Positions 1 to 34,797 of a stretch of 64,000 nucleotides of DNA are shown here, piece by piece. The stretch's first letter is position 1, and the number at the start of each line of letters is the position of its first letter. The notes beneath the pieces were generated by a model, which saw nothing but the letters and a program-made list of their open reading frames with translations, made no database searches and had not been told where the DNA came from. The stretch lies in assembly GCA_028826165.1 (NCBI GenBank), contig JAPDFW010000082.1:124001-188000 (forward strand). The letters are read 5' to 3'. The DNA is from Anaeramoeba ignava BMAN (taxonomy: Eukaryota > Protista > Anaeramoebae). The translations under genes and the position numbers were made by a program.

Positions 1-2076
1 TGTATTAGGACGATTTGGTTTGAATCTAATCATTTCTTTTATTGTATTCCTAAATTCTTGAATTTGCATATGTTTTGATAATCCAAAATCTGTTAATTTT
101 AAATGTCCTGTAGAATCAATCAAGAAATTTTCTGGTTTTAAATCTCTATAAAAAATATTTGAATATAAATGTAAATATAAATATAAATATAAATATAAAT
201 ATAAATATAATTATAAATATAAATATAAATATTAATATAAATATAAAATATAAATATAAATATAAATATAAATATAAATATAAATATAAATATAAATATA
301 AATATAAATATAAATATAAATATAAATATAAATATAAATATAAATATAAATATAAATATAATTATAAATATAAATATAAATATAAATATAAATATAAATA
401 TAAATATAAATATAAATATAAATATAAATATAAATATAAATATAAATATAAATATAAATATAAATATAAATATAAATATAAATATAAATATTAATATAAA
501 TATAAATATAAATATAAATTTTGTCCTAAAAATACCGATGAATAACATTCAGTTTATGTAAAGCTTCAACACAAAGAATCATTTCAGCTAAATAAAAACA
601 AGCAGTATTTTTATCAAGTTTTTTAACCTTTTGAATCAATGCTTTCAAATCTCCACCAATAAGATATTCCATTGCAAGATAAAGGAAATGATTATCTTGG
701 AAAGAATACATTAATTTCACTAACCATTCTGAAGAATGTTGTGCAAGAATATCTCTTTCGCTTCGAATATTTTTAACCTAATTTTAATTTTGATTTTGAA
801 TTTTAATTTTAATTTTAATTTTAAATTTTAAATTAATTTTAATTTTGAATTTTAAATTTTAATTTTGTACTTGATCCATTTGTGAAATTTCTTCTTTTGA
901 CATTCTTTTTAATGCTAATATTTCTCCAGTATCTTTCTTTTTACATAAAAACACCTCACCTCAAAATTTTAAATTGAATTTTATAAATGAATTTTAATTT
1001 TGATTTTAATTTTAATTTTAATTTTAATTTTGATTTTAATTTGAATTTTAAATTTAAATTTTAATATTAATTTTAATTTTAATTTTAAATTGAATTTTAA
1101 TTTTAATTTTAATTTTGATTTTAATTTGAATTTTAAATTTAAATTTTAATTTTAATTTGAATTTTAATATTAAAAAATACCATATCCTCCTTTTCCAATT
1201 TTTGCAATAATTTCAAAGTCTTTCACAAAAAGTCTTGTTCTTTTTAATCTTAAAAAAGTAGTTTCTCTTTCAAAATGTTTTTTGTGCATTTCATCAGCTT
1301 CTTTTTGAGAAATTTTTTGTTGAGAAATTTTATCACGAAGAGATTTTAAACGTTGTTGTCGAGTATAAATGTAGTAAATACGTTCAATTTTCATTTGATC
1401 CATATAACTTTTACAAAGACCAGACTAAATTTTAAAAAAAAGAATAATTTTAATTATAAATTTAATTATAAATTTAATTATAAATTTGTTTATAAATTTT
1501 ATTATAAATTTGTTTATAAATTTGTTTATAATTTTGATTATAAATTTAATTATAAATTTAATTATAAATTTTATTATAAATTTTATTATAAATATAATTA
1601 TAAATTTAATTATAAATTTAATTATAAATTTGTTTATAAATTTGTTTATAAATTTGATTATAAATTTAATTATAAATTTAATTATAAATTTGTTTATAAA
1701 TTTAATTATAAATATAATTATAAATTTAATTATAAATTTAATTATAAATTTAATTATAAATATAATTATAAATTTAATTATAAATTTTATTATAAATATA
1801 ATTATAAATTTAATTATAAATTTAATTATAAATTTAATTATAAATTTGTTTATAAATTGATTTTTCGTATTTTTTCTTTTTTTTTTCTTTTGTTTCTTTT
1901 AAAAATTTTTTGTGGAAAAAGTGAGAAAATTTAAAAAAAAAAATTTAAAAAAAAAAACATTTAAAAACAAAAACCTTTTGTTTTGTTGATTCAGAAATTA
2001 TAACTTTTGGTTTTTCAGAATGTTTTTTTGATCTTCTTGATTTTTCTTTTTTTGGAGATTCTTGATTGTCTTGCAT
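1..2076 (-). CDS. NDR/LATS/Dbf2-family AGC Ser/Thr kinase, runs off the window start. Exons 2076-1975, 1424-1181, 959-871, 777-536, 145-<1
   Basis: The spliced translation is frame-consistent across four GT-AG introns. It has an NTR-like segment ([16 protein letters not shown]), [40 protein letters not shown] and DFGLS. Confidence 0.92.
160..520. repeat. (ATATAA)n microsatellite filling kinase intron 4 (146-535)
   Basis: Near-perfect hexamer array seen directly. It is the source of the spurious IFIF/KYKY ORFs. Confidence 0.95.
780..1170. repeat. (AATTTT)n degenerate arrays in kinase introns 3 (778-870) and 2 (960-1180)
   Basis: Hexamer arrays on either side of the 89-nt exon 959-871. Confidence 0.85.
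1445..1858. repeat. (TTATAAATTTAA)n 12-mer array in kinase intron 1 (1425-1974)
   Basis: 12-nt periodic array with TTTGTT variants. Confidence 0.92.
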
Positions 2077-2087
2077 TTTAAAAAAAA

Positions 2088-2126
2088 AAATGAAAAAAAT
2101 GAAAAAAATGAAAAAGAAAAATGAAA
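2088..2126 (-). promoter_or_regulatory. Tandem TCATTT initiator-like motifs (4 copies) upstream of the kinase ATG
   Basis: Plus-strand ATGA at 2090, 2099, 2108 and 2121 reads TCAT on the sense strand within 50 nt of ATG 2076. The same pattern recurs at other genes. Confidence 0.55.
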
Positions 2127-33177: not shown

Positions 33178-33466
33178 TTCTTATTTAATTATTAATTAGG
33201 AATATTAATTAGAAATTTATTTATTTTTGTTTATTTATTTTACTTAAAAATTGAAATAGAAAATTGAAAAGAAAAAAATGAAAAAAAAATTAAAATTAAA
33301 ATATTTTTTTTTTGCTTTTTTTTTGTTTAAAATAAAATAAATAAAAAAAGGAGAAAAACTTAAAAGGGATCTTTTTATTTATTTATTTTTCTTTCTTTTT
33401 TATTTTTGTTTCTAAAAAAAAAGAAGAAAAGAAATTTGATTAAATTGATTTTTTCCTTAAATTTAA

Positions 33467-34797
33467 TTAAAATTTTTCTGCTTTTTTTAAATTTTCATTT
33501 GTAGTTTCAAATTTAGATTGAAGTTTTAAAATTATTGAAGATTGTTTCCATAAATAAAATGTTAAAATAGATTGAAAAAATAAGGAAACCCATTCACTTA
33601 TTGATCCAAGAAATCCTTTACTTAAATGATCTAAAAATGGAATGGAAACATAAGCAACAATCCACCAAAAAATTGGTTTTAAAATTTTTGGACTAATTTT
33701 ATATTTGGACATACACCAACAAATAGGCGCAAGTAAAGAGTAAAGGATCTTTTTTTAATTATAATTTTAATTTTAAATTTAATTTTAATTTTAAATTTAA
33801 TATTAATTTTAAATTGAATTTTAATTTTAATTTTGATTTTAGTTTTAATTTTAATTTTAATTTTAATTTTAATTTGAATTTTAATTTTATTTTGAATTTT
33901 AATTTTAATTTTGGATTTAATTTTAATTTTAATTTTAATTTTAATTTTAATTTTAATTTTAATTTTAATTTTAATTTTAATTTTAATTTTAATTTTAATT
34001 TTAATTTTAATTTTAATTTTAATTTTGATATTAATTTTAATTTAATTTTTGATTTGAATTTTTAAATTGAATTTTAATTTTAATTTTAATTTTAATTTTA
34101 ATTTTAATTTTAATTTTAATTTTGAATTGAATTTTAAAATTGAATTTTAATTTGAATTTTTAAATTGAATTTTAATTTTAAAATTGAATTTTAATTTTAA
34201 TTCGAAAAATCTACAAATTTTATATTTGATGATATTGCCAATAAAAGAAATTTCCAATCAAATTGTGTCTTGAGAGTTCCAATCCATAAAATTAAAAATT
34301 TAGAAAAAAAAGATTCTGAAGATCCCCAACTAAAAGCTAATAAAGGAGTTCCTCTTTCATTTATTTTTAAGAACTTAATTAGCCAGTACATCCCAATAAA
34401 ATCAAGAAGCTCTATAATAAATAACATTATTGCTGAAATGATCTTAAAAGAAATGGTTATTTTTTCTTCTGTTTCTTGATCAGGTAAAAATGTTGCCATT
34501 AATCCAAGCTTTTTTTTTAATTTAAAAATGTGAAAGAAGAAGAATAAACAAAAAGAAAGAAAAAATTATATAATTATATAAATTTAATTTTTAATCATTT
34601 CTCATTCAAATTAACAAAATTAATTCATTTCTTTCATTTCTTAAATTGCAAACTTTAATTATTATTGTTATAACATAAGCACTTATTCCATAAAGATATG
34701 TTGTTGTTTGAAATCTTGACACTAAATTGTGCTTATAAAACATAAAAGGAACTGAAACTAATATTGAAATACAAGTTGAAAGATAAACGAAACCCAT
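33467..34797 (-). CDS. TMEM147: TMEM147 (BOS/nicalin-NOMO complex subunit), ~239 aa. Exons 34797-34654, 34508-34215, 33748-33467
   Basis: KLGLMATFLP, LDFIG, W.SSE, LWIG....FDWKF...AISSNI match TMEM147 hallmarks. Both introns are phase 0. Confidence 0.85.
33757..34200. repeat. (AATTTT)n array in TMEM147 intron 2 (33749-34214)
   Basis: Direct inspection. Confidence 0.92.

Follow-up and report, generated by a model that had tools for sequence, protein, structure and literature searches.

A/T-rich tandem arrays appear to fill ordinary introns and some intergenic spacers of the protist Anaeramoeba ignava

Arrays in the window and the introns that contain them

We analysed 64,000 nt of the anaerobic amoeboid protist Anaeramoeba ignava (the window; positions 124001-188000 of contig C83, JAPDFW010000082.1, in a 42.8-Mb assembly of 147 contigs), where long introns and some intergenic spacers consist largely of A/T-rich tandem arrays. 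The explanation that we favour, with a probability of about 0.8, is that ordinary introns and spacers have been inflated in place by such arrays and that no special splicing system is involved. Arrays were called with Tandem Repeats Finder (TRF), AT-rich arrays being counted from at least 100 nt, and every array listed in a first-pass annotation of the window was recovered at its place and with its unit. Introns were placed by listing GT..AG pairs around low-GC segments and demanding open frames on both sides, and for almost every window array this enumeration yielded an in-frame intron on the same strand as the adjacent gene. Within the first 35 kb, 15 of the 17 AT-rich arrays are coding-sequence introns between in-frame GTA...AG sites. 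Array coverage of the curated introns longer than 300 nt is 0.89-1.00 each, which bears out the earlier description of long introns as almost wholly tandem repeat. Each of the 17 introns placed with confidence has GTA at its 5' end and AG at its 3' end, and the U12-type 5' consensus (G/A)TATCCTTT was found at none of the tabulated 5' ends, either of the curated window introns or of those predicted in the 224-kb sample described below. To judge from sequence, the array-bearing intervals are probably ordinary U2-type GT-AG spliceosomal introns.

Protein domains and public proteins agree with these placements. Each exon was run separately against Pfam, not as part of a joined model, and several profiles resume on the far side of an array. 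The Pkinase profile runs on across 778-870 and 146-535 (profile positions 14-41, 43-121 and 123-155 on separate exons), the RhoGAP profile across the 1,695-nt array (16-83 and 93-147), RRM_1 across 7294-7656 (1-24 and 27-70) and Vault_2 across the (AAAT)43 intron (1-29 and 32-60). Moreover, junctions agree exactly with three mapped public proteins, namely TRAPPC11 P0001, the RRM protein P0059 and the vault protein P0185, and both P0185 and the foreign transcript-derived protein P0186 are colinear across the major vault protein (MVP) intron. The C-terminal exon at 21708-23351 encodes 548 residues that match A. ignava TRAPPC11 KAJ5072163.1 with 100% identity, and TRAPPC11 paralogs are also colinear across the array of intron 1. 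The 1,695-nt RhoGAP intron and the 1,769-nt TRAPPC11 intron proposed earlier are both exact in-frame GT..AG intervals, and the second agrees with KAJ5072163.1, which has the same junction ...NAPSGF|SEVIEEK. A word-based protein search with the 349-residue RhoGAP exon (12947-13993, plus strand) returned no match, a public model included; the gene may be annotated differently in public records or not at all. A search for contigs that encode the public proteins P0002 or P0059 gave no record, hence no cDNA-like contigs.

Intron size, array content and abundance across the genome

To cover more of the genome, we combined the window with sixteen 10-kb pieces from six other contigs into a sample of 224 kb (0.5% of the genome). 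A naive intron finder based on open reading frames (ORFs) was dropped, its hits being about equal on real and reversed sequence (93 against 90). A finder scored by codon usage gave 60 hits on real sequence versus 10 on reversed sequence, hence ∼17% false positives, and it miscalls the intergenic array at 48297-49027 as an intron. The 60 predicted introns comprise 33 of 39-145 nt, 10 of 185-296 nt and 17 of 334-2,166 nt, the last figure being the largest predicted; the intron sizes, which had been called bimodal, are a right-skewed continuum. Mean TRF coverage in the three classes is 0.44, 0.46 and 0.91. Short introns are not free of arrays either, as had been claimed, since 44% of their length is covered on average and the introns at 778-870 and 19011-19132 are almost pure array. 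The short introns hold mini-arrays of the same hexamers that build the long arrays, and these may be seeds for growth.

TRF arrays of at least 100 nt occupy 30% of the sample, and the 103 AT-rich arrays among which units were compared make up 25.7% of it. Their commonest periods are 6 (37 arrays), 12 (18) and 11 (9); period 6 fits the usage of microsatellite, and the 12-nt units of the two largest window introns are minisatellites by strict usage. The density of perfect short tandem repeats (STRs; units of 1-9 nt, at least 3 copies and at least 10 nt, the definition of PMC12699852) is 90 bp/kb, and the record STR density, held by Plasmodium falciparum, is 109 bp/kb (PMC12699852). Units are shared among loci, contrary to the idea that each intron has its own: AAAATT is the unit of 23 of the 103 arrays, the sample has 31 loci with (AAAATT)4 and 21 with (AAAATC)4, the TRAPPC11 12-mer is found again in an unlinked array of 2.1 kb, and ∼10 loci genome-wide carry the RhoGAP 12-mer. 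However, if rotations and strands are counted as one, A/T-only 6-mers form only ∼10 classes and 12-mers ∼180, so that part of this recurrence is expected and does not disprove independent local origin.

According to the genome paper, the genome is 80.65% A+T and has 32,108 introns (0.74 per kb) with a modal length of 76 nt, a maximum of 4,168 nt and a GC content of 8.14% (PMC11550330). In the accessible portions of that paper, the account of introns is limited to number, length and GC, and neither the accessible text nor the accessible supplements use the terms ‘microsatellite’, ‘tandem repeat’ or ‘simple repeat’ (PMC11550330). Array-filled introns and spacers are a genome-wide trait of A. ignava, one that these portions do not describe.

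Splice signals, decoys and folding

The arrays of long introns begin 2-16 nt past the 5' splice site and end 10-16 nt before the 3' splice site, and in RhoGAP intron 2 the TRF-defined array extends through the 3' splice site itself. That arrays nearly abut both splice sites supports the earlier view that the long introns did not grow by transposon insertion. Because the array runs nearly from end to end, the branch point of the largest introns must lie inside the repeat; no conserved branch motif was found in the last 50 nt of the 60 predicted introns. The interiors had been called information-free, and decoy-free is the better description: the curated introns pooled (∼8.2 kb) have only 4 GT and 13 AG inside, and the two largest have neither dinucleotide. 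Hence internal or recursive splicing is impossible in the 1,695- and 1,769-nt introns, which have to be excised whole. Of the arrays with a strand call, 24 have more C than G on the sense strand and 6 have more G than C (p = 0.0014). Sense-only avoidance of GT and AG contexts by G was considered and rejected, as sense C occurs in the mirror context (TCA/TGA) at an equal rate.

It had also been suggested that A/U-balanced units fold back and bring the intron ends together. We folded thirteen introns with ViennaRNA against dinucleotide shuffles, and only two of them, (TATATT)n (z −6.3) and (GAATTT)n (z −9.8), fold better than their shuffles. Five fold significantly worse, namely kinase 960-1180 (z +2.9), TMEM147 (z +5.9), RhoGAP (z +6.7), TPR 4624-5413 (z +9.4) and TRAPPC11 (z +23); the RRM intron 6919-7091 tends in this direction too (z +1.8), and the (AAAATC)n esterase intron has a minimum free energy of 0.0. 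End-to-end distances lie inside the shuffled range with the exception of the MVP intron, which is just below it (6 versus 7-87). Fold-back as a general mechanism therefore finds support neither in the shuffled-control folding nor in the end distances. An Rfam scan of the window gave no match.

The TRAPPC11 intron in paralogs and in a sister species

TRAPPC11 intron 1 (24766..26534, minus strand) is 1,769 nt long, is in phase 1 after residue 130 and consists in the sense direction of (ATTTAATAATAA)∼144 (TRF 24777-26521, a 12-mer in 144 copies), with 0 GT and 0 AG inside. A. ignava has five TRAPPC11 paralogs that are 26-45% identical, and in all five the junctions read from sequence place a phase-1 intron 2-5 residues ahead of an E-x-x-EEKI motif. 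The content of this intron differs among copies: besides the window copy on C83 with unit ATTTAATAATAA, the introns are ∼1,480 nt on C64 (unit ATAAAATTATTT), ∼830 nt on C102 (AAAATT), ∼750 nt on C57 (AAAATT) and ∼540 nt on C132 (AATTTT). In A. flamelloides, the homologue KAJ6229464.1 is interrupted at that residue and in that phase by an intron of 4,807 nt, which is complex sequence with a GC content of 22% and a TRF coverage of ∼12%. The comparison of species proposed earlier shows, at this locus, site and phase kept and length and content different. This intron has an ancient position and a shared long state, its content has been freely exchanged, and at this site array filling is confined to A. 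ignava. With five TRAPPC11 copies in A. ignava and at least three in A. flamelloides, the family shows an unusual expansion for a TRAPP III subunit.

Arrays outside coding-sequence introns

Arrays are not a feature of introns alone. Coding-sequence introns were detectable at only 32-40 of 88 sampled arrays versus 5-10 in a reversed-sequence control. In the window, a 936-nt AATTC/AAATTC array at 20674..21609 sits between the convergent stops of the esterase (20686) and TRAPPC11 (21705) genes, and a 731-nt (AAAATT)n array at 48297..49027 sits between the convergent ends of a C2 gene (stop 48119) and SMG1 (stop 49035); neither is an intron. These two are the purely intergenic kilobase arrays of the window, and it may be noted that both lie between convergent 3' ends. 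Divergent and tandem spacers of the window are 51-290 nt. Small gaps between genes had been reported before (50-250 nt), in good agreement with the present measurements, where 9 of 11 intergenic gaps are 51-289 nt.

A further array of 1.16 kb (7798..8961, TRF 7799-8954) lies upstream of the ATG of the RRM gene on the minus strand, with this ATG (7784) on one side and the stop of the upstream gene (9136) on the other. Its sequence suggests that it may be an intron of the 5' untranslated region (AAG|GTATTT ... TTTAG|) or else an intergenic spacer. A complex block of ∼70 nt occurs in it three times, at 8230, 8594 and 8784 (spacings of 364 and 190 nt), which indicates block duplication besides slippage of the unit; a repeat search on 7799-8954 recovered only the 12-nt period.

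Origin of the arrays

In the explanation that we favour, intron interiors would swell in place through A/T-rich arrays, most of them with 6- or 12-nt units, probably by replication slippage and unequal exchange to which the whole non-coding part of the 81% A+T genome would be exposed. A process common to all non-coding DNA would place arrays in some intergenic spacers as well. Introns would tolerate the arrays because these carry almost no G, and the usable splice signals that are left would be a strong GTA(A/T) donor and an (A/T)AG acceptor at the ends. The identity of the unit would turn over fast and the position of the intron would persist, at the TRAPPC11 site together with its long state; we infer that the arrays are neutral. 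Of the earlier proposal that introns grow by slippage of a local seed, tandem growth in place is retained, since mini-arrays, block duplication and the paralogs speak for it, and the locus-specific units are not.

Several observations weigh against this explanation. No transcript-derived A. ignava proteins were found for the genes searched; the public gene models are annotation and no independent proof of the introns. The tract lengths are those of an assembly that was built from Nanopore reads and polished with Illumina data. The homologous A. flamelloides TRAPPC11 intron contains 155 GT and 179 AG, so that decoy-rich introns are spliced in this lineage, and the lack of G in A. ignava is probably for the most part a consequence of array composition and not something that splicing requires. 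Finally, a 13-nt variant unit present at >1,000 loci is unexplained by purely local seeds. This C-containing unit, AAAATTCATTTAT, is scattered through (AAAATT)n arrays, in the window at 981, 4638-5392, 6021-6038, 6928 and 48445-48844. The 13-mer was not present in the one A. flamelloides locus compared, the TRAPPC11 intron. An origin of the 13-mer from the 5' splice site was rejected, as the splice-site fusion GTAAAATTCATTTAT occurs just 9 times genome-wide, and so was a branch-site origin of TTCATTTAT, a motif that is not enriched near the 3' ends of predicted introns. Chance recurrence cannot explain the 13-mer; dispersal, a recurrent mutational path or selection may do so.

Dispersal is the core of one alternative, in which a satellite family of (AAAATT)n with the 13-nt AAAATTCATTTAT seeds introns from elsewhere, carried by a mobile element, ectopic recombination or circular DNA. 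The copies of the 13-mer are spaced at 6n+1, which marks it as a discrete 13-nt unit, and the 17-mer AAAATTCATTTATAAAA has 5,067 copies in the genome versus 2 for the reversed pattern, with its core at 16 loci of the 224-kb sample (about half of the 31 (AAAATT)4 loci) and the variant mostly in the sense orientation (6 loci versus 1-2). These numbers would fit a dispersed family. However, shared unique flanks or termini were not seen and arrays adjoin the splice sites directly, the rarity of GTAAAATTCATTTAT argues against an introner-like 5' end, the small space of A/T-only units makes recurrence expected by chance, and the five paralogous introns differ in unit; we regard seeding from elsewhere as possible but rather unlikely. 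Selection on array length has been weighed as well, with long introns and convergent spacers kept for roles such as transcription timing, nucleosome exclusion or termination while their sequence is free to change. TRAPPC11 intron 1 is long in 5 of 5 paralogs (0.5-1.8 kb) and in A. flamelloides (4.8 kb), compared with the 76-nt mode, and this alternative would also suit the convergent setting of both purely intergenic window arrays, the excess of C over G on the sense strand in 24 arrays versus 6 and the lower self-complementarity of most arrays relative to shuffles. A long ancestral intron inherited by all copies accounts for the paralogs without selection, though, and array length varies three-fold among these paralogs. 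Arrays also occur in every context and take up a quarter of the sampled DNA, and we consider selection for length distinctly unlikely.

It is still less probable, in our judgement, that the repeats are real but that noisy long reads, once assembled and polished through low-complexity DNA, gave kilobase lengths that are too great or otherwise distorted. The assembly was made with ABruijn from R9-era Nanopore reads, followed by Racon, Nanopolish and Pilon with Illumina polishing (PMC11550330), and many one-base length variants of the unit stand inside arrays, both in favour of such distortion. Tracts of 0.4-2 kb are, however, far below the typical Nanopore read length, arrays contain irregular non-periodic variant units and internal complex blocks, and the pattern is seen again at ∼100 sampled loci. 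Moreover, for a stretch of which 54% is array, 66% of the sampled 31-mers occur in read-derived contigs (run X1), though these contigs may stem from the same sample. A more far-reaching proposal would make the arrays a genome-wide, strand-aware satellite system, in which A/T 6- and 12-mers together with the ∼5,000-copy 13-mer actively spread into introns and convergent spacers, and in which a G-poor transcribed strand and selected spacer length would act in expression and preserve ancient introns such as TRAPPC11 intron 1; we think this improbable.

Comparison with other repeat-rich genomes

The trait of A. ignava finds its closest analogues on the Drosophila Y chromosome, in gigantic introns filled with satellite DNA such as those of the Y-linked fertility genes kl-3 and kl-5 (PMC6508621). 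In both systems the bulk of the intron is simple satellite and the whole block has to be transcribed and removed. The Drosophila introns, however, are of megabase scale and belong to a few Y-linked testis genes with a dedicated expression programme, whereas the A. ignava arrays measure 0.2-2 kb and lie in hundreds to thousands of ordinary genes of a compact 43-Mb genome. The repeat content of the Drosophila Y introns varies between related species, with gene structure kept. Among protists, P. falciparum resembles A. ignava in being ∼80% A+T, in the dominance of A/T repeats in non-coding DNA and in its density of perfect STRs, and Dictyostelium has another STR-rich, extremely AT-rich genome. 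Unlike in these STR-rich protists, the imperfect 6- and 12-mer arrays of A. ignava reach kilobases and make up >90% of long introns. In human genes, intronic A/T-rich expansions (FXN GAA, SCA10 ATTCT, RFC1, and TTTTA/TTTCA in BAFME) arise by slippage and reach kilobase scale, but they are rare and pathogenic, whereas the arrays are the normal state of many A. ignava introns. The arrays share with introner-like elements that their motifs are common to many introns genome-wide. They differ from introner-like and transposon-derived introns in lacking dispersed near-identical intron copies and common ends; the element that loci share is the tandem unit.

The trait is a descriptive genome architecture and not a new mechanism. 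It is of interest that kilobase A/T arrays can make up at least a quarter of the DNA of a free-living protist whose genes are tightly packed, and that many of these arrays interrupt coding genes and are apparently still spliced out. A. ignava can serve as a system for the choice of a branch point among ∼140 identical candidate sites, for the turnover of intron content at a fixed position, where five paralogs and a sister species can be compared, and for the question why A/T expansions of the type that causes disease in human introns are harmless here. The arrays also call for practical caution in annotating and assembling the A. ignava genome.

Array-bearing introns of the window and neighbouring genes

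All genes at the left of the window that contain array-bearing introns, up to the RRM gene, are on the minus strand. The kinase intron at 146..535 (390 nt) is 92% array with sense unit TATATT (TRF 162-519, AATATA), reads in-frame GTATTTTT..TATAG and has 0 GT and 1 AG inside. The next, at 778..870 (93 nt), is short yet 99% (AAAATT)n. A third, at 960..1180 (221 nt; TRF 965-1173, AATTTT), consists of (AAAATT)n with one TTCATTTATAA variant copy, and the junction across it rebuilds the glycine loop IGKGGY|GEV. A probable fourth kinase intron at 1425..1974 (∼550 nt) contains a 12-mer array (TRF 1444-1858); its donor is uncertain, being GTTTTT instead of GTA, with three in-frame alternatives. In the TPR/proline-rich gene, the intron at 3219..3823 (605 nt, sense (GAATTT)n; TRF 3230-3801, AAATTC) is exceptional in that its sense strand has 59 G versus 2 C (56 G and 0 C in the array itself), and still it has 0 GT and just 3 AG inside. 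It is followed by an intron at 3866..4010 (145 nt, 96% array) and by the TPR gene intron at 4624..5413 (790 nt; TRF 4625-5381), which consists of (AAAATT)n, contains the 13-nt variant 11-13 times, always in the sense orientation, and splits a TPR repeat at profile position 20 of 34. Three introns of the RRM gene are spanned by the public model P0059: the last intron at 5966..6060 (95 nt, residues 396|397), the one at 6919..7091 (173 nt, 99% array, residues 110|111) and the one at 7294..7656 (363 nt, an array with 19/60-nt periods, residues 43|44), which splits the RRM_1 domain.

On the plus strand, RhoGAP intron 1 (10961..11045, 85 nt) is without an array, and RhoGAP intron 2 (11250..12944, 1,695 nt) is (ATATTTATTAAA)∼143 (TRF 11256-12952, 12-mer) and contains 2 G in all, both in the splice sites, with 0 GT and 0 AG inside. 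The esterase gene, also on the plus strand, has an intron of 122 nt at 19011..19132 that is 89% (AATTTT)n and one of 762 nt at 19253..20014, an (AAAATC)n array (TRF 19255-20002, AAATCA) with 82 C and 2 G that is predicted to be fully unstructured. The remaining introns are on the minus strand: TRAPPC11 intron 2 at 23406..23590 (185 nt), spanned by the public model P0001 at residues 521|522; the MVP intron at 32668..32949 (282 nt), with the perfect (AAAT)43 (TRF 32690-32862); and the TMEM147 (DUF2053) intron at 33749..34214 (466 nt, (AAAATT)n; TRF 33753-34202). At the right end, an (AATCAA)n array of >1.2 kb (62767-64000), with 2 G and 176 C on the plus strand, continues past the end of the window.

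Two adjoining ORFs at 38021-48119 (plus strand) encode multiple C2 domains, with 8 and 11 C2 matches. Within this region, 42863-45928 is a coding tandem repeat of 495 nt in 6.2 copies that are 95% identical, suggesting that domains were amplified internally very recently. The SMG1 kinase gene (49035-58895, minus strand) is a single ORF of 3,286 residues with SMG1, PI3_PI4_kinase and FATC domains (FATC at residues 3257-3285), and its GC content is 41-46%, compared with 25-33% in nearby coding DNA and ∼19% genome-wide.

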